Counted from the whole stretch's first letter, positions 22,224 through 54,995 are shown. The stretch: 63,994 nt of DNA, filler included, from Octopus bimaculoides (GCF_001194135.2; 7 parts of 7 records of this genome joined end to end with filler, not necessarily neighbours in it); one strand, 5' to 3'. Program-made: numbers and translations. Notes: generated by a model from the letters alone, not told the origin.

Positions 22224-22338
22224 GAAAGAAGTAGTTAGTCAGTGCCCTCATGATGTTTTCTGCTACAAGCTTGGGCTTCACTATTTGTTGAATAGAAATG
22301 TGACAGCATCTTTGAATATCACTATGGTTGGAACCGAT
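22224..22338 (+). CDS. Candidate upstream exon of the uncharacterised repeat-exon gene
   Basis: TTTTAAACTCCAG acceptor, open frame KEVVSQCPHDVFCYKLGLHYLLNRNVTASLNITMVGTD and a phase-0 GAT|GTAAGA donor compatible with the exon at 22776. No repeat homology supports it. Confidence 0.35.
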
Positions 22339-22775
22339 GTAAGAGAGATAACCCTGTCCATCCTGTAACACATCCTGCATGGCCATTCTAGATATATATC
22401 TTTTGTTTATAAACCTAACTGACTATGACGTCTTTCTCCTTCCAGTTGTAGAGAGGTTATGTGTCTTTGACCATTTGAGTCTGATGAGTTGCCTTTACAG
22501 CTTTAACAATTAACTTCCTAAAAACATTTTACTGCTCTAATCTTTTAGAGTGTGCTTCTTTTTCAGATATATGAACTACTGATGATTCATTACACACTCT
22601 AGTTGCAGAATGTTTTTCAAAAGGCCACCACATAATCTGTGTTCTATCACTGTACTTCTGGCCATGTGTTTCTACATAATCACAAAAGTTACTGTCTCTT
22701 GTATACTATGGAGTTATATGATCTCGGTTATTCTACAAAATATATATATTTATGTATGTGCTTGTTTCATTTTAG

Positions 22776-22919
22776 AAAAGTATCAAATATGTGGTAGCTG
22801 GTAGTAATGTAGAAACATGTAATGCATGCAGAGCCCTTGTACCTTTTTCAACATTTGCTCTATCTAAAGAGACCCGTGAACCCCGTGAGATCAACATAGA
22901 CCTTGCTAAACAAGAACAA
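22776..22919 (+). CDS. Exon A of uncharacterised repeat-exon gene
   Basis: CATTTTAG acceptor and CAA|GTAAGT donor; 144 nt, phase 0-0; KSIKYVVAGSNVETCNACRALVPFSTFALSKETREPREINIDLAKQEQ. Confidence 0.7.
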
Positions 22920-23649
22920 GTAAGTTTATAATCTTATATATTTTTGTCTTAGTTTGTCTGGAGTGACATCATTATTAAGAATTGAAAGATATAAGGCTCT
23001 GGTTGGAAAAGCAGATGCTTTTTAAATTTTAATGTATTTTACATATTTTAGTAATTGGACTGTGGTCTTGCCAGGGTATTGAAGGGTTTAGTCAAAGAAA
23101 TTGAACCCTAGTACAATCTTTTGTAAATATTAAATATGATACTTAATTTATCTGTCCCTTTTGCTGAACTGCTAAGTTGAAAACACATAAGCAACTCAAC
23201 ACCAGCTGTCTAGTGATGGTGGTGGGTGGTTGGGGTTGGGAATAAACACACAAACACATGATGGAGTTCCTCAGTTTCTATCTACCAAATTCATTCATAA
23301 GGCATTGGTTGGCTTGGTACAAAAGAAGAGACATTTACCCAGGAGGTGCCACACAGTGCGACTGAACCCAAAATCACATGGTTGCAAAGTGAGCTTCTTA
23401 ATCACACAACCATGTTTAATATGTGCAAAGGATAATGCGCTTCAATTAAAAATTTTTATTGTTTATGATTGTGCAAACCAGTAATAACCTGGGGAAAAAA
23501 TTCATTATTTATTCTGATGAGAGAAAGAGAGAGAGATATTGTTATGGTTTAAATATAGGAGCTATTTTTACCTCAAAGCTGAATGTATGTTTAATAAATG
23601 TACACTTGTAAATTTGTCTAAAACTTGTATGTAATATGTGTTATTTTAG

Positions 23650-23784
23650 GATACTGCTGAATATGTAGTGCTTGAGGATACGAAGGAAAAATGTGACACA
23701 TGCAAAAATATGGAGTCTCTTCCAACACCCACTACATCTACTCAACTCCAAGAGGTCAACATAGACCTTGCTGAACAAGCAGAA
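23650..23784 (+). CDS. Exon B of uncharacterised repeat-exon gene
   Basis: TTATTTTAG acceptor and GAA|GTAAGT donor; 135 nt, phase 0-0; DTAEYVVLEDTKEKCDTCKNMESLPTPTTSTQLQEVNIDLAEQAE. Paralogous to exon A. Confidence 0.72.
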
Positions 23785-23847
23785 GTAAGTTTATATTCTG
23801 ACACAGTTGATCTAACTGTGCTTATAGTGAGTTTATTATTAAGTTAT

Positions 23848-23905
<58 letters not shown>

Positions 23906-24083
23906 TGTTATTGGTGTTGTTTAATCCCTGCTCAACTCTGATCTCAAACACACTTGTCTTACTGTTGCTTCCTGTTTCCCCCTTTCTTTTCACACTTTTC
24001 TGATGGGCTGTAGTGCACATGAGCACTGGATACAGTAAGCTCTAAAAAATATATACTCACAACAGAGGCAGTGTTAATACCAA

Positions 24084-24672
24084 GAGGTAATATTTATCCC
24101 TATTTAAACGCGGATGTTCTATAAGAACAAACTATGCTGTGGTAGATACCATGAGAGAAACTCTCATACGGGCTTTTGGTGCAAAATGTATACTTGTTTA
24201 TATCACTAACAGGGGAAATAATTCCTCACCATTTCCAGCACCAAGACCACCAGATCATGTAATTTTGACCTTCCTTGATCTTGTCAATGATGGGATAAAC
24301 GCTCGGCTGCTAGAGATAGCAGTGACTCATCTTCCTACCAGTGATATATAGAATAACAGTTCTAGGATAGATGCTGGTGTCACAGTTAGCCAATGAGCTT
24401 GTTAAAAAATGTATATCAGTGACAGAAGCACTGTTAATCTATATATCGCTGGCAGTTGAGTGTCCATCATTGACAAAACCAAAGAAGGTCAAAATCATAT
24501 GATCTGGTGATTTTGGCACTGGAGATGGCAGGGATTTATCTTCCTGCTAGCGATATAAACAAGAGTACACTTTGCACCAAAAGCCAATATGAGAGTGACT
24601 CTCATGGTATCTACCACAGTATAGTTTATTCCAATAGAACATCCACATTTGAGTGGGGATTAATATCACCTC
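24084..24672. mobile_element. Diverged ~590-bp fold-back (MITE-like) element in the intron between exons B and C
   Basis: The left arm (GAGGTAATATTTATCCC...GTGGTAGATACCATGAGAG...GGTGCAAAATG...GTCAATGATGG) is the diverged reverse complement of the right arm over more than 200 bp. Confidence 0.8.
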
Positions 24673-24769
24673 ACAATAATCTCTCTCTCCCAATTTCTAC
24701 ACACACACATGTGTATGTGTATGTATATATGTGTGGCTGTACGTGAAATACATATATATCTTATTTTAG

Positions 24770-24898
24770 GGTAGCACTAAATACTTCGTGACTAATGATA
24801 ACAAGTACATTGGTACCAATGCTGTTTCGACATCCAGAACAGTCAAAGAGGTGTATCAACCCCAAGATATCAACGTTCACTTTGCAGAACCAGAACCG
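24770..24898 (+). CDS. Exon C of uncharacterised repeat-exon gene
   Basis: TTATTTTAG acceptor and CCG|GTAGGT donor; 129 nt, phase 0-0; GSTKYFVTNDNKYIGTNAVSTSRTVKEVYQPQDINVHFAEPEP. Confidence 0.68.
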
Positions 24899-25684
24899 GT
24901 AGGTATATTATCTAATATATTCATATTCATAGAAACTTTATTATTTACTTATTTGTTATATATATTAGTTATTTATGGTTTTGTTATTTGGCACCAATTG
25001 AGCTCTGATTGAGCAGACCTATTATCAAAAGTCATTCCAAATGTGACCATCACCCACATTTTGTTTCAGGTGTAATGTATATAGGATTACACTATTTAAT
25101 GTGTGATATTTCTGAAGATGGTAGGGTGTTAACTTCAGGGAAATTTGCCTGCAATTTTTACGGAGGGCTACATTGAGGTTCCTTCATTGATCTTTTATCT
25201 TCTTTTACTTGTTTCAGTCATTGGACTGTGGTCAAGCTGGGGCACCACCTTGAAAGATTTAGTCAAACAAAGTGACTTCAAGACTTATTTTATTGATCAC
25301 TTTTATTAAACCGCTAAGTTACTGGAACATAAACAAACCAACACCAATTTTCAAGCAATGGTGAGAGACAAATACAAAGGCACAGACAGACAGACACACA
25401 GACACACACACACACACACAAGGTATCTATCTGTCAAATTCCTCTCAAAGCTTTGGTTGGCCAAAGGCTATAGTAGAAGACATTTGCCCTAGGTGTTATG
25501 CAGTAGAACTGAACTCAAGACCATATAATTTGGTAAGCAAACATCTTAATTACACAGCCACACCTGATGAAGTGTCTGTGTGTGTGTGTGGAACATGTGA
25601 GATCTTCATTGAGAAATTTTGATGCTTAAATTTCAAGGATTGGTTTGTGAGCTATCCTTGAACCTCACAAAGTAGCTCAGCCTA

Positions 25685-25792
25685 ACAACTACATTAGTTT
25701 GCATTAATCTGTCATAGCTGCAACAGCCACTATAAACCAAAGAGACTTGTCAAATCCAAGATATCAATGTTCACTATGCAAGTAATCATTGA
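25685..25792 (+). pseudogene. Decayed fourth copy of the repeated exon (pseudo-exon D)
   Basis: AAC AAC TAC ATT AGT matches exon C NKYIG, and CAA GAT ATC AAT GTT CAC TAT GCA matches QDINVHFA. It has in-frame stops, a frameshift and no good splice sites. Confidence 0.55.
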
Positions 25793-26092
25793 GCATTATA
25801 TCCTTTTATATTCAAATTCTAAAGGGGTTAGAATTGTTTTCCCTTCCACTGTAAAAAAATAGATAGTATGAGGGTGATTGACTACAATATGGTGTCTCTA
25901 TGGTGTCAGTGTTATGGTGTATGTTTGTGGTAGCCATGGAATGTCAACATTCATGCCCATGCATGCACACACACACATGCATATATATATATATATGCAT
26001 ATATATATACATACATACATATATGTACATATACATATATATACATAAACAGGCTTCCACATGAATGTCTTAACCACAGAGCCATGCTTATA

Positions 26093-26128
<36 letters not shown>

Positions 26129-26432
26129 TATAAATATATATGTGTATTTATATATTCATATATATTTTTGTATTTATTCTTAAACACGAAATCAGACTGG
26201 TGAGTGTGTTAACTTAATAAGGTACTAAAAGAGAATGACTCTCGCCAAAAGAATTTTATTGACAGTGACTTTGAAATTTTGACCAATGAAACCGTCATCA
26301 AAGTCACTGTCAATGACAGTGTAAGAATAATAAATTTGTAAAGTTGTACTCTACAAAAGTATAGAGTAATGTAAAATTGTTTTTAATATAACTGAACATA
26401 AAAAAAACAAATATTAACTTAATATACATCAT

Positions 26433-26463
<31 letters not shown>

Positions 26464-27233
26464 AGTTTATATATATATTAATATTATTTCAGTTATTAAA
26501 ACTTTCGATATTTTAAATACGTTAATAGTTACCAGAGGTAGCAAAATTACACTAAAAAACAAGATATCACAGCCGTACACATGTATATACGCGCACACAC
26601 ACACATATGCAAACCTTCATTAGACTACGATGTTTCATTTACTTTCAATTTTATTTACTTTTTCGCTACATATAAATATGTCATTAGGTTCCCTCATATG
26701 ATGTACTACCTTAGTTCCCTCCCTTCCTCCCTCTTTTCTGACTCAGCAATTAGCTCTCTCTAATTTAACAGAACCACAACATATTTATCTCCCCATATTT
26801 AAATAACTCTCTGAGTTTAACCTTTAGCATCACGTCAAAAACACCCTCCCTTTATATCTCTATGTAAACTAGCGTTCTTATTCCTAAAGCCCATGGAATA
26901 ATATCGTTGACCCCTTTACATCTCTATGTAAACAAACCTTCTAACGGTCACTGACCATGTAACATCTCAGCTNNNNNNNNNNNNNNNNNNNNNNNNNNNN
27001 NNNNNNNNNNNNNNNNNNNNNNNNNNNNNNNNNNNNNNNNNNNNNNNNNNNNNNNNNNNNNNNNNNNNNNNNNNNNNNNNNNNNNNNNNNNNNNNNNNNN
27101 NNNNNNNNNNNNNNNNNNNNNNNNNNNNNNNNNNNNNNNNNNNNNNNNNNNNNNNNNNNNNNNNNNNNNNNNNNNNNNNNNNNNNNNNNNNNNNNNNNNN
27201 NNNNNNNNNNNNNNNNNNNNNNNNNNNNNNNNN

Positions 27234-27267
<34 letters not shown>

Positions 27268-27335
27268 CTCCTACTCAGCTGATAAATTTTCTTTTGAGAA
27301 ATATAGAATTATAAAATGTGATTGATATTTTTCAG

Positions 27336-27641
27336 ACCTGTCATTATTGTTTGGTGGATGACATTGATGATACCGTAGATGTTAGCAGTTCTTTTCTCAC
27401 TTTCCAAGAGCCTTGTTGCTGTTGCAATAAACCACATAGTTTCGAAACTGAATTCACTCAGATCCTCGAAGATCATATTGCTCAGCCATGTTGTGCTCAT
27501 GTTGTAACAAGGAACCTAACAAGCATGTGTGAAGACAACCTTCTTTCATGCAGTTCTAGTACATCTTCCTTGGAGGCCTTTGATTTTTTATTCACCAACC
27601 ATGCAGACAATTTTGATCTTAAATTTACGAATATTGATTGA
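27336..27641 (+). CDS. Probable terminal exon of the uncharacterised gene (Cys/Asp-rich)
   Basis: GATATTTTTCAG phase-0 acceptor; 101 codons TCHYCLVDDIDD...EPCCCCNKPH...QPCCAH...TNID then TGA; AATAAA about 10 nt after the stop. Confidence 0.55.
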   Translation, partial: TCHYCLVDDIDDTVDVSSSFLTFQEPCCCCNKPHSFETEFTQILEDHIAQPCCAHVVTRNLTSMCEDNLLSCSSSTSSLEAFDFLFTNHADNFDLKFTNID

Positions 27642-28732
27642 GTATAAAAATAATAAAAGAAACTATACTTTCTTTTTCTGACTTATATTTATTTTTTTTC
27701 TATTTTCTACTTTACTTGACTGCTTTCCCTGTCTCTTTTCTCCTTCTTCTCCCAGTGCACATCCCTGACTAGAAAGTTACAAACAAACAATGTAACACTA
27801 TTTTTTTTTGTTTTTGTTTCACTCACTGTGGTCATGCTGGGGCACTACCTCGAAGAGTTTAGTTGAATAAATCGACCCCAGTAATTTAAGTCTGGTAGTT
27901 ATTCTATCAGTATCTTTTTGCTGAATTGCTAAGTTATGAGAACAAAAAAAAAACAACTTCTATTGTCAACTAGAGGTGGGGGACAAACACAACACAATGG
28001 CATGTGCACACACACACACACACACATACCAAAAGGACTTTCATACAGATCCCATCTACTAAATTCCATCATTGGTCAGTACAGGGTTATACTAGAAGAC
28101 ACCTGCCCAATAAACTTTCTTGGTTTTTCTTCTTTTGGCAATCATTTTTGCTAATATTAAATCATTACATTTATATCTTTTATAAATACAATTTCTATGT
28201 ATTCTAAATTCCAGATTGAATAATCAATATCTCCGTTGTTATGTTGTAATCATTTTAGCAATTTTTTTCCAATAACAGAAGTACAATAATGTGTATGTGG
28301 AAAAGGATAAAGATGAGTAAATATACTCTACAAGTATTGAGCACTCCTGTTTGGAAAATTAAGAATGTGCATATATCCTCCTCCTTATTAGTTGTCTATG
28401 CTAGCCTGGGTTGACACTACTATGTGATTGCATATGTATACACAAACACATATTGGTAAAATAGCACAAATGGAACAATAGGAATAAGAGACAACTTGAG
28501 AGGTTATAGCAAGTAGACAAAAATTAAAACATAGTAGACAGAATGTAAACAAAAATAATGAGCATAAAAAGTTGTGCGCAGTGAAATGTATGTTGAAAAA
28601 AGGGAAAGAAGTAAACTGATATTTCGACTGAACCCTTTATCAAAATAAAGTAAGAAAGAAATAAGAAAAAAATATGAAGCAAAGAAACAATATCTGCTAA
28701 TACTGAGCATTCTTTGTCTTGCTGTATATATA

Positions 28733-28999: not shown

Positions 29000-29791
29000 T
29001 GTGCATTTAATTTGTCCAGCTGGACATAGTACCAATCCAAGTTCGTAAAAGACAACACCCCTACAATCCCACTAAATTGAAAGTATAACCTTCTTTGGGT
29101 GAAGTCCTGCTTTGGTGTTTGTGTGCGCTGGTTCACCACGCTTTCCTCATGACTGTTTGCACTTCATATTGTTAAAGATGATCCATTTTTCATCTTCTGT
29201 CACCATTCTCTTCAAAAAAAGAATTGTTTTCTTCACACATCTGCAGCAAGTTGAAGATGGATATTCATTGGCCCATTTTCTCCTCATTAAATTGGTGTGG
29301 GACTCAAATATTGAGCCTGCTGATCTAACCAAGTTAATGCAGAGGGTTTTCAACTTTCGATTTGGATATTTAGAGAATATCTGCAATCATCCTGGTCGTA
29401 TAATGAGTATTGGTCTCAACTAACTGCTTTACTTTGTCACTGTTAATCTCGGACAGCCAGAACGAGGCACACCTTGAATGGGAAGATTTCCCAATCAAAA
29501 TCTTCAAAACCACTTCTGGCACATGCATTCTGTAACAATATCCTCTCCGAACACAGCAAATATCTTCTTGCAGGTTTCCACTGCTTTTTGTCTTTTTGAA
29601 ATAAAAGAAAAAGCATAAGGTGTTGATGATGTTTGTTTTGGTTCTCCCTTTTCAGTGTGATTCCAACCACACAAAATACAACTAGTCTCAATACAAGTTC
29701 GCATTGAACTTCATTAATGTGTTGGGTATCTAACGAGCACACATGCACAAAGGAAAAGAAAAAACAAATGAACTTGTTAGCTAACCCAATA
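29000..29791 (-). mobile_element. Mariner transposon, 5' two-thirds, degenerate
   Basis: TATTGGGTTAGCTAACAAG TIR at 29791. Transposase remnants include KAVETCKKIFAVFGEDIVTECMCQKWF, IWVPHQ and RMVTEDEKWIIFNN. Confidence 0.88.
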
Positions 29792-29799
29792 CACACATA

Positions 29800-31040
29800 C
29801 ACACGACGGTATGACAAACTTCCACACAATTTCCGTCAACCAAATTCACTCACAAAGGATTACTTGGGTCACGGTTATTCTAGAAGATGGATGTCGTTCT
29901 TGTTGAACCAATCTTGATGTTTCTTCACCAGTTTGCTAAATCATGCTTGGAGCAAGAGTGCATCCAAGTGATTTTTGATGGTTTTTTTGTACTTGAAGAC
30001 AGTGTTTGTAATTACTAGGTTGAACTCAGAGCAGAGGGCTAGTAGAAAGTCACCATTTAAATTTCACTTTCCTGCTCCATGTTTGCCTATCATATCAGGC
30101 CTTCTGTCTACACTTCTCCCTACTCTTGCATTGAGATCTCCAGAAATTATCTGCTTGTCTTTGCAAGGAACTTTCCCCAGCACCTCTCTCAGCTTATTCA
30201 ATGTGGGTGCGTAGACACTGACAATTGTGGCATAGACCTTTTTGTGGAGTAGTAGTCTTGTTATGATCCTGTCAGTAACTGGTGTTGGGTCTTCCTTCAG
30301 TTGTAGAGCGGTGGAGTTCCTCATTGCAAGGCCAACACCAGCGCCCCTCCTTATTCTCACCCCAGAAGTATTTGTAGCCATGATCTACCATTCTGTCATG
30401 TCCAAGTGAAAGTGTTTCACAACACAAAGCTGTTATGTCGATGTAATATCTATCTAATTCCTTTTCAACTAGAGTAGCCTGACGGTCAGATCTTTCAGAT
30501 TTGGTTTTATCAAGTAGTGTTCTAATAGTCCAGTCAGCAATAGTCATTATTTTCTTTTGCCCTATCCTACATTTCACTAGCTGCCGGAGTGGGAGCAAAC
30601 CAGCACAGACCTTGTTTACTTGGACGATGTCTGAGTTGGAATGCAAATCTTTTGCCTTTGTGATTTCATTTACCATAGAACTACTTGCAAAGTCATGGAA
30701 TGAAACTAGCTTTTGCAATTGGCTAGTATCACTTTCGATACAGCACTAATGTTTTCCAGCGGGCAAGGACAAGCCAAGACATGCTGGCATCAGTGCCATA
30801 CTGCAGCGACTGGCTGGATTATAGGTTTGTTTATCTCCGCCCTTGGGTGATGCCACCTGTCAATCATCTGGGAGTGGTCTATCATAGACACGTGCACACA
30901 TTATTGGATGGCCATTGATTCTTATGAGTTCCTCTGTTCTTTGTCAGGTTTTGTTTTTAGTCCCCAGGGTGTCCAAAATCACTCTCGTCACCAAGCAAGC
31001 TTGGCAGGGTTGCCGGTTTAGTCACCAACGACTCGACCAT
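29800..31040 (-). mobile_element. RTE-clade LINE 5' UTR and apurinic endonuclease domain, degenerate
   Basis: MTIADWTIRTLLD...ELDRYYIDITALCCET...GVGLAM...TIVSVYAPT...IISGDLNARVG...LVITNTVF, which are APE motifs of the RTE type. Confidence 0.88.
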
Positions 31041-31180
31041 GCAACAAATTGTACTGGGTTACATGTTACCAGATTCTAGAAGATACTTGCCAAAAGTGCC
31101 AAATATTGGGACTGAACCCAAAACTATGTGGTTGCAAAGTGAGCTTCTTAACCACAGACACACACACACACACACATATA

Positions 31181-32018
31181 TCTATATATATAAAAATGAG
31201 AATGTGTGTCTGTCTGTCTGTGTGAATCCCTAAAACTCGAGAACTACGCAACCAATTTCATTCGAATTTTACACATGCCTTACTTAGGGTTCCAGTTGTG
31301 TTTTAGTCAAAAAAATTATTAACTTCTTGCAGAGTTCGAGCACACGGCAACATAATATCTCCTCCACTATTTAAGTATTACGTGTCAAAAGTGAAACAAA
31401 AACACTCATGTCAAATACTTTCACTTTAAAAATGAAACTATTCCACTAACTGAAACAATCACATTTCGATACTGNNNNNNNNNNNNNNNNNNNNNNNNNN
31501 NNNNNNNNNNNNNNNNNNNNNNNNNNNNNNNNNNNNNNNNNNNNNNNNNNNNNNNNNNNNNNNNNNNNNNNNNNNNNNNNNNNNNNNNNNNNNNNNNNNN
31601 NNATTTCATAAAGATCCATTCAGTACTTTTGACGTAGTTTTGGATAAGAAAACAAATGACTAATGTGTGTGTTTGTGTGCATGTGTATGTGTGTGTGATG
31701 GGTGTATATATATATATAGATGTACATGTAATATGTACACATATATACATATATACATGCATACAGATATCTATATATATATATACACCCATCACACACA
31801 CATACACATGCACACAAACACACACATTAGTCATTTGTTTTCTTATCCAAAACTACGTCAAAAGTACTGAATGGATCTTTATGAAATTTGGAAATTATAT
31901 TCTTTGCATAACGGCCATAACTCCCATGAAAATTCATATAACTTTGATGCGTAGTCTAGACGGCGTTTTTAGATTTCATTATTCTCTTTACCCGGGCAAC
32001 GCCGGGTATTTCTGCTAG
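31181..32018 (+). mobile_element. Non-autonomous Helitron
   Basis: A|TCTATATATAT 5' end and a subterminal hairpin ACCCGGGC-AAC-GCCGGGT followed by CTAG|T, giving the canonical A-T insertion signature. Confidence 0.85.
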
Positions 32019-32036
32019 TATATATATATGTATATA

Positions 32037-32267
32037 TAAAGTGATGGTTTGTTGCCAACTTAATGTGGCAGTCCCAGGAAAGGGAAGAATGCTACTGCTA
32101 TTTAGCCCCAGGAAACACCGTTTCCAGTTTGCTATGTGACACAAGCTTTCTGTGTCCTTATGTGTCACATAGCCAACTGGAAATGGTGTTTCCTGGGGCT
32201 AAATAGCAGTAGCATTCTTCCCTTTCCTGGAACTGCCACAATAAGTTGACAACAAACCATCACTTTA
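32037..32267. mobile_element. 231-bp near-perfect fold-back MITE
   Basis: TAAAGTGATGGTTTGTTG...TATGTGACACA and TGTGTCACATAG...CAAACCATCACTTTA form arms of about 105 bp with only a few mismatches. Confidence 0.85.
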
Positions 32268-32336
32268 TTGTGCTGCTACTGTATAAGTCTCTCTCATAGA
32301 TTTAGAAATGCAATATTTCTAATATATATACTCTCT

Positions 32337-32759: not shown

Positions 32760-33065
32760 TTATATATATATATATATAAATGAGAATGTGTGTCTGTCTG
32801 TCTGTCTGTGTGAATCCCTAAAACTCGAGAACTACGCAACCAATTTCATTCAAATTTTACACATGCCTTACTTAGGGTTCCAGTTGTGTTTTAGTCAAAA
32901 AAAATTATTAACTTCTTGCAGAGTTCGAGCACACGGCAACATAATATCTCCTCCACTATTTAAGTATTACGTGTCAAAAGTGAAACAAAAACACTCATGT
33001 CAAATACTTTCACTTTAAAAATGAAACTATTCCACTAACTGAAACAATCACATTTCGATACTGTA
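32760..33065 (+). mobile_element. Second copy of the Helitron 5' portion
   Basis: About 285 bp almost identical to 31190-31474. Confidence 0.85.
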
Positions 33066-33969
33066 GTGACAGATACTTTCACAGAGAGAGAAAGAGAGAG
33101 ACAGNNNNNNNNNNNNNNNNNNNNNNNNNNNNNNNNNNNNNNNNNNNNNNNNNNNNNNNNNNNNNNNNNNNNNNNNNNNNNNNNNNNNNNNNNNNNNNNN
33201 NNNNNNNNNNNNNNNNNNNNNNNNNNNNNNNNNNNNNNNNNNNNNNNNNNNNNNNNNNNNNNNNNNNNNNNNNNNNNNNNNNNNNNNNNNNNNNNNNNNN
33301 NNNNNNNNNNNNNNNNNNNNNNNNNNNNNNNNNNNNNNNNNNNNNNNNNNNNNNNNNNNNNNNNNNNNNNNNNNNNNNNNNNNNNNNNNNNNNNNNNNNN
33401 NNNNNNNNNNNNNNNNNNNNNNNNNNNNNNNNNNNNNNNNNNNNNNNNNNNNNNNNNNNNNNNNNNNNNNNNNNNNNNNNNNNNNNNNNNNNNNNNNNNN
33501 NNNNNNNNNNNNNNNNNNNNNNNNNNNNNNNNNNNNNNNNNNNNNNNNNNNNNNNNNNNNNNNNNNNNNNNNNNNNNNNNNNNNNNNNNNNNNNNNNNNN
33601 NNNNNNNNNNNNNNNNNNNNNNNNNNNNNNNNNNNNNNNNNNNNNNNNNNNNNNNNNNNNNNNNNNNNNNNNNNNNNNNNNNNNNNNNNNNNNNNNNNNN
33701 NNNNNNNNNNNNNNNNNNNNNNNNNNNNNNNNNNNNNNNNNNNNNNNNNNNNNNNNNNNNNNNNNNNNNNNNNNNNNNNNNNNNNNNNNNNNNNNNNNNN
33801 NNNNNNNNNNNNNNNNNNNNNNNNNNNNNNNNNNNNNNNNNNNNNNNNNNNNNNNNNNNNNNNNNNNNNNNNNNNNNNNTGCGAACCAAAGGAGATGGCG
33901 ACGTAGACGGGAAAAGGCTCCTTTTTACCACGGCTCACGGTCGAACACAAAAATAAAGATATATATATA

Positions 33970-36155: not shown

Positions 36156-37818
36156 GTGCATCTCTCGCGTTACGACTACTTCAGGTCATTTCCAATATTA
36201 TGCATGCCGTGCAATCTCGTCAGCTACATGTTCTGCAAACGGTACTCTGAGGCCACCCCTATCTTTTAATCCTCTGACACTCTCAGTCAGGTTTTTCCCA
36301 ACCTTGTAAGAACATCCACCTTATTTTTCCTTAAGAGCACAAAAATCACTTATAACTTCGAACAGAATTCAGGTATTCAAACTCTCTTCTCACTGGTAAT
36401 TATCTATCACACCTTGCCCTTGTGGCAAAAATTCGTAATAATTATTTATCATACCTACTCATATACAGTATACAGTAACTGACTCAGTTCTGATTTCGAT
36501 ACTACGCACCCCTATCTCAAAGCCTAATTTATGCCCCTAAACAAAACATCAATTTGGCTATATCGGGTCGTTGCAGTCGTCTTTCATCTTAAACTGGATT
36601 TTTCATCGTAGCTACAGACCTTTCTTTCATCGTATCTCCGCAGTTTATCCCACTATCTTTCCTCTTTACATAGCAACGTAGTCCCGAGCCTTTTAACGAC
36701 AGAACTAGTAGCGTAACAGATTTCTATATATTGAGCATAATTCCTATCGACTCAGATTGTCTTAGATCTGAAATCTCATTCCCTCTCTGTCTTCTTCAAC
36801 CTCTACTATTTCCATTGCTGTCGCTTCCGGTGGTTTTGCAATCAACCGCTAATTTTCAGATGACTTATGACCTTTGCTGCAGTCACCAATGTTGTTCACC
36901 AAAATATCATCTATGTAATACTTAGTCACCTCTTTCACTTTGCCCACTTTCTCCAGTATCGTGTTGAGGACTGTCGCCACGATCTTTGATTAGACATCAT
37001 GTCTTGAAGCTGATACTTAACAAACTCTGAGCCACATGAAGCTTTAGATAGACTGATTTCAGATCAACACTTGCAAAAGCCTTTGTCATTTGTCTTCACT
37101 CTCTCAGAATCTCCCTACATACATATGTGGCCTTACCGTCTGTGTGACTTGCTGCAGATCCCGAAAGGCTAACACTAACCGAACTTAATCTTTGTTGACT
37201 GTGGCATAGCAGGTACCACGCCTGAAGTTAATAAGGACGTTAGTGAGCGATGTGCCGGAAGTAAGGAAGGAAATGACATTAGGTGACGAAGCGGGCGATT
37301 TGAGCGTTTTCTTTTTACTCGGGCAATGGCTGAGAACGAACGTGTGCAATTAAGGGGGCCTTGGAAATTCTTTCTATTGGCCAACGGGTAGATAGTATTT
37401 CACAGCTATCCACTTATCACCTCCTCTGTCCAAGGCATTAGAATATCTTCTTCATTCCATCTCTCCTTCTCAAATTTTACTCTCGTCTCCCTTTTTAAAG
37501 GTATTCTAGTAGCTCACTGGAAGCTCACTTCCGGAAACGTTCGACCATCCATTACTCATCACACTTTGCATAGAAATCCCTGGCCTCAATCGCATAAGAA
37601 ATATTCCTTTTACTAGAGCTCACTTAACAATTCTACTGTCCTCTCTCTTTAGCTGTACGCTCACAGTACATTGTACCTCGCTAAACTCTATTCCATCCTC
37701 ACTGACTGTAACACCCTCCCAGTAGGCCGTTCGCACCCATACTCATCACAACAACGACACCCTTAACAAGTGGTACTCAATCACAATCACATTGATCTTC
37801 ATTCACATTCCACGTACT

Positions 37819-38399
37819 TGTAGCGTACGTCTCTCTCTCTTTCTCTCTCTGTTATATGTACATGGATGCGGACGTAGTGGATAACAGCTAGCCTTTGGTC
37901 GCATCTTTGGACCCTGTTGTGTCCACCACTCTGCTTGGTTGGTATTGGCGCATTTTGTCTCCTGGTCACACGGTCGTTACAAACTGGTGACCCCGACGTG
38001 ATACGCGGCTGTACCCGACGTGGATCACGCGGTCGTGCCCGACGTGATTCCAACACGCAGCCCGACGTTCACACGGACGTTTACAAAATGGTGACCCAAT
38101 GCCATCTTCATGACCACCGCTCTTTCTTCTTTTCGCTACAGTTATTTCATCCTTTTCGTCTATTTTGCCTTACACAAAATGACTGGTGGTGGTGGTGGTG
38201 GTGGTGGTGGGGGCTCTGTGGCGTACTTCTCTCTCTCTCTCTCTGTCTCTCTCTCACTCTTTCTCTCTGTTATATATACATGGATGCGGACGTAGTGGAT
38301 AACAGCTAGCCTTCGGCCGCATCTTTGGACCCTGTTGTGTCCACCACTCTGATTGGTTGGTATTGGCGCATTTTGTCTCCTGGTCGCACGGTCGTTACA
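37819..38399 (+). mobile_element. TRIM-like miniature LTR retrotransposon
   Basis: LTRs at 37819-37981 and 38217-38399 (TGT(A/G)GCG...CGTTACA); PBS at 37985-38002; purine-rich (GGT)nGGGGG tract before the 3' LTR; 235-bp non-coding interior. Confidence 0.85.
37985..38002 (+). promoter_or_regulatory. Primer-binding site complementary to the tRNA-Trp 3' end
   Basis: TGGTGACCCCGACGTGAT is the 18-nt reverse complement of the animal tRNA-Trp 3' end (ATCACGTCGGGGTCA-CCA, recalled). It lies 3 nt after the LTR. Confidence 0.85.
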
Positions 38400-39710
38400 A
38401 ACTCTACAGTGCTTGTATCCTTCATGTAACCTTATATTCCACCAACTGCTTTTATGCGTAGCTAGGTGGATGATGAAGGGGTGAGCATGAGTAGGTGGTC
38501 TGACCTGAATAGATAGATATAGGGCAGTACGTTTGGGTCTGATGTATAAGCCTGTTCAGATTTAGAGGTCCGGAGCTGGTAGACAGTAAATTTATGGGGT
38601 ACCACGGGTGGCACACACCCTAGCTACGTCACTGTTTATACTATTCCTTCTCAACCAGTTATCAACCAGCCTGGGAGTCACGAAAGTGGCTGTGCAACCT
38701 GTATCAACAGTGATCCTTGCCGCACTCCCTGCGGCTCTAATTATTTGCGATTTATCACATTGTCACAAGTCCACATGTTTATAATAGACGAATATAGTTT
38801 ATTAACTCGTTACTGGTGAATAACTGGTACTTGTTTTAACAACATTGGACAGCGTATTTAGATGGTGGCGATAGGGTCGGTTCGGTACTTTTGGGCCTGC
38901 CCTTTAATTCTGTATAAGGGGCGGTAATGGTGGAAATCTTAAGAGTGGCTCCAGGAGGCACACACTCAAGCTATGCCGCTGCTTGAATAAGATTTCAACT
39001 CTGACGAAACTGAATAGTGTGTAGCATTTTCGTCCGATGTTCTACCCCCTCACCATTCTAATACAGTACCGGACCAATTACCCAGCACACTTAGAACCGG
39101 AAATGTCCCGGATTTCTTGATTTTTCGGTTTTCTGAAGACAGTCTTAAAATTAAAACATAAAATAAACTACGAAAAGTAAAGAGCTAAATTGTATTAAAA
39201 AAAGGATCAAAGGTCTTTCCTGAGCAATAGGCTCATAAAGCCGGTTTCCTGAATTCTTTAGCACGTATATTCTGGATTCCTATGAGTCGGATAAGAGATC
39301 TGTAACTGAACTTTAGCTCTTCTTTTATTAACGAAATGTTTGCTGGATTCAGCGATAAAGGAAATACCAGGCACGTAACAGGAGTACAATTCATCGATTA
39401 TATACTTTTCTTCGAAATCTTTACCATTGTAGCAACGTAAAATTATTTTACTTAAGAATAAATCTTGATTCTGTCAACTTCCTTTATATCAATTAACAAA
39501 AAACCACGTCACTCCATCCCGTCTTTGCAGTAAATTGGAGGAAAATTACCGTGCAAATAACCGTCTAATACGTGTCTTTTATTGAAATCGTTTGAAGAAG
39601 TTTCTTTCATCTCCCGAATGAGTTAAAATATTCAAAACCTCTCTACCGTACGTTTAAAGGTGCGACAAAAGAATACGACAGAACTTAAGAGTTAAACAAT
39701 AAAACCTCAC

Positions 39711-40208: not shown

Positions 40209-40459
40209 CGCATGTACATATTTGTGTATTCAAACATTTATGATTATATTTTTGCATACATGTATGTATGTACGTATATTCTTTTATGAGTTTCAGGCCA
40301 AAGGTTGTGGCCATGCTGGGGCACTGGAACTAGATATCGAAGCACATATGCTATAAATATTAGCATGTAAATATTGGGTCAAAATAAAACCATTTTGGAT
40401 AGAAAAAAATCGAAGGTTGTTCTCCAAACGGCATGCTATTATTTGCAGCTTCGTCAAGG

Positions 40460-40900
40460 CGGCGAGCTGGCAGAATCGTTAGCACGCCAGGTAAAATGCT
40501 TAGCGGTATTTCTTCCGTCTTTACGTTCTGAGTTCAAAATCCGCCGAGGTCGACTTTACCTTTCATCCTTTCGGGGTCGTTACAATAAGTACCAGTTGAG
40601 CACTGCGGTCGATGTAATCGACTTACTCCCTCTCCCGAAATTGCAGGCTTTGTTCCTATATTAGAAAGAATTATTTACAGCTTTGTATGTGCTTCGAGAT
40701 CCAGTTCCAATTCATATGACGTCAACAGTATTACACATACAGGCAGGAGCTGGCAGAATCGTTAGCTCACCGGGCGAAATGTTTAGCGGCATTTCATCCA
40801 TCTTCATGTTCTGAGTTCAAATTCGACTTTGCCTTTCATCCTTTCGGAGTCGATAAAATAAGTACCAGCTCAGTATTGGAGTCGACGAAATTGCTGGCCT
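40460..40900 (+). mobile_element. Two family B SINE copies (40460-40660 and 40745-40900)
   Basis: Both begin GAGCTGGCAGAATCGTTAGC and share GTTCTGAGTTCAAA and CTTTCATCCTTTCGG.GTCG.TA.AATAAGTACCAG. Confidence 0.8.
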
Positions 40901-53718: not shown

Positions 53719-54995
53719 CTGAAAAATAAAGAACCAGATTTTAATGAATTGTCTACTTCTTTTCATCCTTCCTATATCTACCCTACGTGTTAAGAATAAA
53801 TATGAAAATATTCATTCTAGATCTCGCTTAAGACAGTGAAAACAGCAGTTATATAATGTGTGTGTGTGTGTGTGTGATTTGTTTTGTCAGACAATAAGTC
53901 TACTCATTATATTACTACATTATTATCTAATGCTCAGTACCATACTTCGAGGATTTATTTTAAGACCAGCTGATGACTTACAACGTCTAAAACAAACGCG
54001 ACAACCAAAAAAGAAACACAGTATTTCAACAGAAATGTTTGAGAATATCAATGGATCTCTCTTCAGATGTTTTTGTAGTCCCGGTTTCTATTTGTGCACT
54101 TTGTCCTGTGCTGCACAAGTGATATACTGTAGATATAGCGGTTGGTAGCCATAGATTGTTTCAATGCGTATAATATGCGATTTTATATGATTAACAAAGC
54201 TTGTCTCCCGAAAGAACATATCCACAGCTATCACAATTCAGGCTCTTCAATAAAGCCTTTGTGTAACATACCTATGAGCTCAGCATATTTGATGTTCCTT
54301 TCGCAAACATGTTACGACCCTTCTTAACGGAATGTCTCCAGTTATTCTGTTATTTTATATCATCCTAAACACTCACATTTATGGGGTTTCTGTTTTTTTC
54401 ATTTCTATTTTAAGCAGTGCTCGTATCTTTTTCATGTTTGTACTTCCCATTTGCATTTCGCCCAACGAAACCTGTACAAGGCTACTAATGACAAAAAAAT
54501 GTCGATAAAATTGATTATCAGACAAAATAATTTTCCATGGTATTTACTATTCCGGGTTACAAAGGCTCTACTTATCTCTTTTAACTGCGTTTAACCAGCG
54601 ATATAGTGACTGGAATGTTAAAAATGCATATACAATGACACGATTGTTCATAAATTAATGAAATAAATATTTAAAGTAATTCACTATTTTAAAAAGGAAA
54701 TCCCCCACGCCATACACCTGCTTACTTTCTACTGAAAACCACTAAAAACATAGAAGTTGTTTCAACTTAAACGATATTATTTCCTCACAAATTTTCTGAG
54801 CCACTCCTTCCTAAATATTATGATACACACATGGAATATTACTACAGAAGATCTTAATTCCTCATTCCAGAACTCACATTTATGGGGTTTCTGGTTTTCA
54901 TTTCTATTTTATGCAGTCCTTGTTTCATTTTCATGCTTGCCCTTCCCATTTGCATTTCACCCACCGAAACTTACGAATTAGTATCAAACAAAAGC

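Follow-up and report, generated by a model that had tools for sequence, protein, structure and literature searches.

A 63,994-nucleotide (nt) stretch of Octopus bimaculoides DNA, hereafter the window, carries between positions 22,776 and 27,641 four plus-strand coding exons that we assign, with a probability of about 0.8, to the 3' end of the annotated gene LOC106876992, where they encode repeat units 11 to 13 and the C-terminal tail of a BTB-BACK protein whose repeats form an array with one unit per exon. Exons A, B and C and the terminal exon T splice in frame, as a preliminary description of this DNA had proposed, and the spliced product is identical at every residue to the C-terminal 237 amino acids (aa) of the RefSeq and UniProt models of the gene, whose annotated coding sequence ends at position 27641, the last base of T. 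The same description had taken the exons for an unrecognised gene. That claim does not stand: they are part of a 1768-aa BTB-BACK protein from a locus annotated since the first O. bimaculoides release. The gene is therefore a known one, and as a gene call nothing here is out of the ordinary. LOC106876992 is listed as an uncharacterised gene with three isoforms (XP_014781255-57, of 1768, 1714 and 1660 aa; UniProt/RefSeq entry A0A0L8GHP2 / XP_014781256), and a literature search by locus, accession names and topic found no paper on it.

The piece of the window that holds the exons begins right after a gap of 1063 N. It is base-identical, at an offset of 17807, to genomic record CM046611.1 (L002), in which every unit could be placed through an exact residue match to the O. 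bimaculoides models P0017 and P0016, exon A at 40583-40726. The other ten units and the BTB-BACK head lie upstream, beyond the edge of this piece. We searched 1.84 billion representative proteins by index-free phmmer with a 275-aa query made of the spliced peptide and an upstream exon (22224-22338) that was later rejected, and obtained a single cluster (E = 9e-167, eight matched stretches). It corresponds to O. sinensis LOC118765495, for which RefSeq lists 14 isoforms of an 'uncharacterized protein'; the longest of these, used as a query, brought up two more proteins, A0A0L8GHP2 of O. bimaculoides and the orthologue in O. vulgaris. A word-indexed protein search (with the 275-aa query and with a 23-unit profile) missed known Octopus proteins, so that its negatives carry no weight. 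No encoding contigs were on record in a search with the terminal-exon open reading frame (ORF) and with O. sinensis isoforms X4 and X1.

The three repeat exons are all in phase 0-0, and their limits, recorded correctly from the outset, match the annotated boundaries exactly. Exon A (22776-22919, 144 nt, KSIKYVVAGSNVETCNACRALVPFSTFALSKETREPREINIDLAKQEQ) encodes unit 11 of 13, exon B (23650-23784, 135 nt, DTAEYVVLEDTKEKCDTCKNMESLPTPTTSTQLQEVNIDLAEQAE) unit 12, and exon C (24770-24898, 129 nt, GSTKYFVTNDNKYIGTNAVSTSRTVKEVYQPQDINVHFAEPEP) the degenerate unit 13, which lacks a CxxC motif. Exon T (27336-27641, 303 nt plus TGA) encodes an acidic, Cys-rich tail of 101 aa with a net charge of -14 and ten Cys, arranged as TCHYC, CCCC, CC and two single residues. 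The splice sites are clean, with ttttag or tttcag acceptors at A, B, C and T and gtaagt or gtaggt donors at A, B and C, and frame 0 is the sole open frame in each of the four exons. The donor flank gtaagtttata common to A and B, the CxxC motifs of A (TCNAC), B (KCDTC) and T (TCHYC), the Cys clusters of T and the AATAAA hexamer that follows had all been pointed out before and are borne out here. The hexamer (27652-27657, plus strand) lies 11 nt past the stop codon and is a candidate poly(A) signal of a kind common in AT-rich DNA; the stop codon and the next 23 nt, hexamer included, show no difference in O. vulgaris.

Tandem exon duplication, the origin first suggested for A, B and C, is supported by local DNA alignments that lie beyond the maxima of 500 shuffles in each comparison: 73 for A/B (shuffle maximum 35, z = 17), 42 for A/C (maximum 39, z = 7.1) and 42 for B/C (maximum 33, z = 7.2). 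A repeat search likewise recovered a three-copy family (D5), with 82% and 74% identity over 65 nt, which spans the exon 3' ends and donors. The candidate exon upstream of A, at 22224-22338, has an AG acceptor, a GTAAGA donor and an open frame in phase with A. We rejected it because it is missing from every orthologue model and because in O. vulgaris it has 4-nt and 3-nt indels and a GT-to-AT change of the donor. Scans of the window piece for tRNA genes (ARAGORN) and Rfam families gave no match.

Whole-protein architecture

The head of the protein lies outside the window and was examined in the 1610-aa O. sinensis orthologue, in which Pfam finds a BTB domain (PF00651) at residues 46-150 (71.6 bits against a cut-off of 20.5, 7e-20) and a BACK domain (PF07707) at residues 170-254 (59.7 bits against 20.9, 3e-16); a BTB match is precomputed for the O. 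bimaculoides proteins also. With BTB above its gathering score and BACK directly after it, the protein belongs among the BTB-BACK proteins. Its best sequence relatives in the PDB are the BTB-BACK regions of KEAP1, KLHL3 and KLHL11 (about 1e-17 by phmmer, over some 235-240 residues), with KBTBD2 also found, and the BACK region can be aligned with those of KLHL3 and KEAP1. The Pfam scan of the O. sinensis protein, taken to E values up to 1, contains BTB, BACK and noise only. It shows no Kelch repeats and no match to the PHR domain that occupies the C-terminal ~170 residues of the BTBD1/2/3/6 class. The name 'actin-binding IPP' (IPP/KLHL27) given to the O. vulgaris model is not supported, because Kelch repeats are absent. 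LOC106876992 is laid out as BTB, BACK, about 700 residues without a recognised domain, the 13 units and the Cys-rich tail. The N-terminus, MGTRFSQ (residues 1-7 of P0017, outside the window), fits the N-myristoylation consensus (Gly2, Ser6) and is kept in O. bimaculoides, O. sinensis and O. vulgaris as well as in the Logan contig L003.

For the part of the protein encoded in the window no domain family was recognised at first, and this agrees with the present searches: Pfam assigns no family to the spliced peptide, and PDB sequences give no match to the C-terminal 237 aa. A profile of the unit reached E = 0.75-1.2 at best against the PDB, to C2H2 fingers. Pfam scans of 20 two-unit segments stayed below the gathering score throughout, with zf-FCS in 9 of the 20, zf-C2H2_ZN292 in 9 and HPIP_like in 12 over G..MERCKICK. 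Having two Cys per unit, no conserved His and Pfam matches below threshold, the units are not classical zinc fingers. AlphaFold2 gave a mean predicted local distance difference test score (pLDDT) of 30.4 for the 237-aa spliced tail (3 aligned sequences) and of 35.5 for two canonical units (20 sequences), with no residue above 50 in either case.

Other candidate readings of the unit were discarded. Homology to HMA domains reached an hhalign probability of 2-3% over 10-13 columns, in a comparison with hand-written HMA sequences, and Pfam shows no HMA match at E values up to 10. Readings of 'EIDIDL' and 'VxYVV(V/A/F)' as SUMO-interaction, LC3-interaction or immunoreceptor tyrosine-based inhibitory motifs were judged by eye against the consensus patterns and are inconsistent across units.

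A tandem array of symmetric exons

The O. bimaculoides array comprises 13 tandem units of 43-54 aa (about 50), each in its own phase 0-0 exon, with the consensus DTVxYVVxGxxMERCKICKNxKxxSTSASPKxIxxxQETRQPxEIxIDLAKQEQ. Most units combine a strand-like Y-V-V motif, one CxxC (present in 10 of the 13), a linker rich in S, T and P, and an acidic EIDIDLAKQEQ end. Units 11 to 13, those of the window, are the most degenerate: 11 is without the DTV start, 12 has a shortened linker and 13 has lost its CxxC. The unit exons share the boundaries ttttag/GAT...CAG/gtaggt and lengths divisible by 3 in all 13 O. bimaculoides exons and in 13 of O. vulgaris; for 13 lengths, divisibility throughout has a chance of 6e-7. 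The intron flanks of paralogous unit exons are also similar to one another, and the duplicated block, copied in tandem as the array expanded, therefore consisted of an exon with flanking intron.

The unit count varies by species: O. bimaculoides has 13 units, the longest O. sinensis isoform has 11, and O. vulgaris has about 13 exons. The array is still gaining and losing units between species. Dead or partial copies persist at window positions 25683-25819, and at 54024-54083 and 37082-37231 of the O. vulgaris locus (L001); the last is a partial unit exon without the 5' part that encodes DTV.YV..G. Four O. sinensis isoforms (X2, X9, X10 and X12) contain chimeric units in which the first 22 residues of unit 5 are joined to the 3' part of another unit. 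Such chimeric and partial units point to splice sites inside units or else to an artefact of the models.

Skipping of any one unit exon keeps the frame, because every unit exon is symmetric, and the modular skipping that had been anticipated from exon phase is seen in the isoforms predicted for O. sinensis and O. bimaculoides. Among the 14 O. sinensis isoforms, units 2, 3, 7 and 9 are dropped singly and units 6-7, 6-9 and 3-7 as blocks, and one isoform ends early; isoforms X5-X14 drop units singly or in blocks. The orthologue of exon A is O. sinensis unit 9, a cassette exon missing from X4, X11 and X12. In O. bimaculoides, the differences among isoforms X1, X2 and X3 come in units of 54 aa. 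All O. sinensis isoforms but the one that ends early (13 of the 14) retain units 12 and 13 and the tail, as do all models of O. bimaculoides and O. vulgaris. At the level of predicted RefSeq isoforms, the proteins of this gene thus differ by whole units, in many combinations, and the array has the properties of a symmetric cassette-exon repeat array, with isoforms that are RefSeq predictions.

Orthologues are present in O. sinensis (LOC118765495) and O. vulgaris. Outside Octopus, the phmmer search of the 1.84 billion representatives detected no relative; as found, the array occurs only in this genus, and it appears to evolve fast. Locus L001 of O. vulgaris runs collinear with the window piece, to which it is 88-92% identical, and has the same organisation of one unit per exon with all lengths divisible by 3. 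The exon B orthologue (L001 50994-51119) carries one in-frame 9-nt indel, and the exon C orthologue (L001 53064-53192) carries no indel. Exon T shares 87% identity with the tail of O. sinensis and O. vulgaris, with 10 of 10 Cys kept and no indel. At exon A the ttttag acceptor of O. vulgaris has been destroyed by 3-nt and 7-nt deletions, and the gene model skips the exon. This model (P0015) also stops early (...CCAHIYRVEDCRHNL), despite a genome (L001 55113-55415) that encodes the full 101-aa tail, 100% identical to that of O. sinensis; its truncated C-terminus is thus unsupported and probably an annotation error.

Three short genomic Logan contigs (L003, L004 and L005, from SRR11869390 and SRR11869391) hold exons 1 and 2 of a further orthologue, which falls into the same 90%-identity cluster as the Octopus proteins (identity of at least 90%) and matches none of the three species exactly. 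These contigs come from a fourth octopod.

Intronic and neighbouring sequence

The last intron, between C and T, contains an assembly gap of 261 N (26973-27233) that adjoins a (TA)n microsatellite and stops 102 nt short of the T acceptor; the chromosome-level record has this gap as well (L002 44780-45040). We judged whether an exon might be hidden there from two independent, gap-free orthologous assemblies, those of O. sinensis and O. vulgaris. In the proteins of both species unit 13 is joined straight to the tail (...AEPEP/ACHYC...), and the O. vulgaris exons at L001 53064-53192 and 55113-55415 share their boundaries with C and T. The O. vulgaris interval that matches the gap region (L001 54306-55005) holds an element resembling a short interspersed nuclear element, together with microsatellites, and no unit-like reading frame. 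Nothing in these sequences indicates a hidden exon.

The same intron carries a pseudo-exon at 25683-25819 (plus strand), a decayed copy of exon C plus 3' flanking sequence, with in-frame stops and a lost donor. It aligns to exon C with a score of 77 (shuffle maximum 41), forms with it the repeat family D6 (81% identity over 43 nt) and is detected by tblastn at E = 0.002. Since O. vulgaris carries the pseudo-exon too, at L001 53964-54100 (tblastn footprint 54024-54083), it is older than the split between the species.

Intron B-C contains a long imperfect inverted repeat (24084-24293 / 24464-24672) with arms of 143 and 81 nt and 80-82% complementarity. It looks like a foldback element or one of the miniature inverted-repeat transposable type, and is present in O. 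vulgaris as well, where L001 52365-52954 aligns in reverse orientation. Short interspersed repeats occur at about 23058, 25222 and 27825 and at 40464-40541 and 40747-40824, one type with 'ggactgtggtcatgctggggcacc' and the other, which looks tRNA-like, with 'gagctggcagaatcgttagcacgcc'; ARAGORN and Rfam reported nothing on them.

Downstream of the gene, two overlapping minus-strand ORFs of 105 and 148 aa (30064-30718) resemble by eye a fragment of a long interspersed nuclear element endonuclease (...GDLNARVG...). They have no Pfam match at E values up to 0.01, and the stretch is conserved at 90% in O. vulgaris (L001 55840-57249). Pfam assigned no family to the downstream ORFs at 29112-30718, 37917-38309 and 40374-40664. 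A direct repeat of about 300 nt (31176-31474 / 32764-33063), with its last 166 nt 100% identical, has one copy abutting the gap at 31475-31602 and the other ending 41 nt before the gap at 33105-33879. It is either a very young repeat or a redundant assembly of a single copy, and a related copy lies in an intron of the O. vulgaris gene (L001 25768-25978). From the first base past the gap at 31475-31602 runs a perfect 119-nt palindrome (31603-31721 / 31769-31887), which, given its place at the edge of a contig, has the look of a foldback element or an assembly artefact. A second hairpin (32036-32143 / 32161-32268) is 95% complementary, and a 156-nt direct repeat (37830-37985 / 38248-38403), 95% identical with a spacing of 418 nt, lies in a GC-richer stretch.

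Constraint, proposed role and relation to known families

We suggest that the array and tail are most likely a lineage-specific C-terminal interaction module, of a length that varies by splicing, on a KLHL-like BTB-BACK scaffold. Tentatively, this can be extended to an adaptor. As in KLHL proteins, the head would form dimers and might bind Cullin-3, and the array and tail would stand in for the Kelch propeller as a flexible, probably disordered module for multivalent recognition or scaffolding. The choice of cassettes by exon skipping would then set the length of the array and its valency, and units 11 to 13 may serve mainly as a linker to the Cys-rich tail.

Several observations weigh against this interpretation. 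The splicing is known from gene models, which are predictions, and AlphaFold gave no confident structure for the units or the tail, a result that fits disorder and that may merely reflect shallow alignments. Adaptors of Cullin-3 are expected to contact it through a phi-x-E motif, located in the alpha3-beta4 loop of BTB, and through a 3-box with which BACK begins. Here the M-S-E and L-R-E of KLHL3 and KEAP1 align to Y-S-N-H and S-N-H, with no conserved glutamate, and an I-T-E lies four residues upstream; Cullin-3 recruitment is uncertain because the motif is not clearly conserved, and a scaffold that works without Cullin-3 is a realistic option. Between O. bimaculoides and O. vulgaris, the ratio of non-synonymous to synonymous substitution rates (dN/dS) is 0.36 in the 3' part of A, 0.48 in B, 0.61 in C and 0.82 in T; the pooled value of 0.58 (15 synonymous and 35 non-synonymous differences) is not significantly below 1 (binomial P = 0.069). 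Exon divergence, at 7.4%, is no lower than the 6-9% of noncoding sequence, and dN/dS among paralogous units scatters around 1.

Amino-acid constraint is weak, and the reading frame is nonetheless protected. Frames are open in three species, the splice sites of B, C and T are kept in O. vulgaris, and B, C and T together contain one indel, of 9 nt, where the rates seen in introns would lead one to expect 4.9 (Poisson P = 0.044). Among intron indels, just 15% have a length divisible by 3. Lack of purifying selection had been named beforehand, together with a lack of spliced transcripts, as grounds for abandoning the gene. As regards selection, this applies by half: the amino-acid sequence is weakly constrained, but conservation extends to the frame and the splice sites. 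Identity between O. bimaculoides and O. sinensis is 96% in BTB-BACK, 87% in the middle region and tail and 82% in the repeats, a profile that fits a translated, fast-evolving and probably disordered region.

The same data bear on an alternative in which units 11 to 13 are translated but functionally inert, near-neutral relics that form at most a disordered spacer, with function residing in units 3-10, the head and perhaps the tail. The dN/dS values, not significantly below 1, the equal divergence of exons and introns and the pLDDT of about 30 speak for it. So does the decay of the units themselves: 13 has lost its CxxC and 11 its DTV start, the O. vulgaris orthologue of unit 11 is left without an acceptor and is passed over in the model, and one further copy, at 25683-25819, is already dead. 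We nevertheless consider complete inertness somewhat unlikely, given that units 12 and 13 and the tail persist in nearly all models, that frame and splice sites are kept in three species with the sole indel in frame, and that the Y, CxxC and (E/D)(I/V)N(I/V)(D/H)(L/F)A positions are retained. Far harder to credit is the proposal that the exons are an independent unannotated gene or that the unit is part of a transposable element. The window piece contains no start codon or upstream exon, which is all that speaks for independence, and models in three species join the exons to ten upstream units and a BTB-BACK head. A match of the unit to a transposable element, which the preliminary description had singled out as fatal, did not emerge. 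All copies have one orientation and one phase in a single array, and outside the array exons and the dead copies no unit-like coding sequence occurs in the 19-kb piece or the 63-kb O. vulgaris locus. Because the copies are confined to the array in one orientation, form a single cluster among the 1.84 billion representatives and, in the spliced peptide and the O. sinensis orthologue, show no Pfam transposable-element domain, the repeat unit is by all indications not a transposable element.

Two further alternatives concern the cysteines. The CxxC units and the Cys/His-rich tail might bind metal, as the preliminary description had hinted, in the form of Zn(Cys)4 sites between neighbouring units or across the BTB dimer, or as Cu(I) in the manner of MxCxxC chaperones. 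The frequency of CxxC among the units, the conservation of C15 and C18 at 90% or more in the two-unit alignment, the ten tail Cys kept in three species and the recurrent sub-threshold matches to zinc-finger knuckle families would all fit such a function. It is set against two ligands per unit with no conserved His, Pfam matches that all stay below the gathering score, a PDB profile E of about 1, the 2-3% hhalign probability for HMA and the lack of a confident AlphaFold knuckle; moreover, at 87% tail identity ten conserved Cys are expected by chance about one quarter of the time (our own estimate, 0.87^10). We therefore regard metal binding as improbable. S-palmitoylation of the tail CCCC and CC runs, which with an N-terminal myristoyl group would anchor the protein to membranes, seems slightly less probable again. 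The Cys runs stand in an otherwise acidic tail, and the N-terminal M-G-T-R-F-S fits G-x-x-x-S/T in the three Octopus species and in the contig of the fourth octopod, but both motifs are of low specificity, and a basic cluster in the middle region might just as well serve as a nuclear signal. Least probable among the functional proposals is a new, Octopus-specific metal-dependent mini-module, in which CxxC knuckles would pair into Cys4 sites between neighbouring units or dimer chains, skipping would tune a string of metal-clamped beads and with it the reach or valency of a Cullin-3-type adaptor, and the tail would be a metal or lipid anchor.

The interest of the splicing-variable interaction module that we favour lies in its architecture. 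We have not found described in the literature a KLHL-type BTB-BACK head combined with an exon-per-unit CxxC array and a Cys-cluster tail, without a Kelch propeller. If the array is a binding module, the gene would illustrate in compact form how exon duplication can give rise to a lineage-specific ubiquitin-ligase adaptor or scaffold, and how the valency of a protein can be governed by splicing.

The protein fails the defining features of the KLHL/IPP, BBP (PHR), ZBTB and HMA families, and its likeness to each is partial. In the BTB-BACK-Kelch and BTB-BACK-PHR classes a dimerising head is followed by a C-terminal recognition module (PMC1257465), and LOC106876992 shares with KLHL adaptors such as KEAP1, KLHL3 and KLHL11 both the N-terminal BTB and BACK module and this overall logic. 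In contrast to their Kelch repeats, however, it has the 13-unit CxxC array, the Cys-rich tail, a spacer of about 700 residues and a phi-x-E motif that is not clearly conserved. ZBTB proteins resemble it in having a BTB head, a long and likely disordered linker and tandem short Cys units, and 'RCKICKNF' is similar to the first knuckle of a C2H2 finger. ZBTB proteins lack BACK, whereas the units of LOC106876992 lack a His pair and fall below zinc-finger thresholds, and homology is unsupported. The likeness to HMA proteins (ATOX1, Atx1, CopZ) was seen by eye, in 'YVVxG..M..CxxC' and 'EIDIDLAKQ..DTVKY' against 'xVxGMxCxxC' and 'KIDISLEKQLVDVY'; profile comparison does not support it, and the unit is some 15-20 residues shorter, with a proline-rich linker where HMA has helix alpha-1. 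For the organisation of the array the closest parallels are the PEVK exons of titin and the FNIII repeats of tenascin, in which one repeat occupies one symmetric exon, exons have been duplicated in tandem and isoforms differ by whole repeats. LOC106876992 follows the same exon-per-repeat logic with an unrelated repeat, in a single genus and with skipping seen in predicted isoforms.

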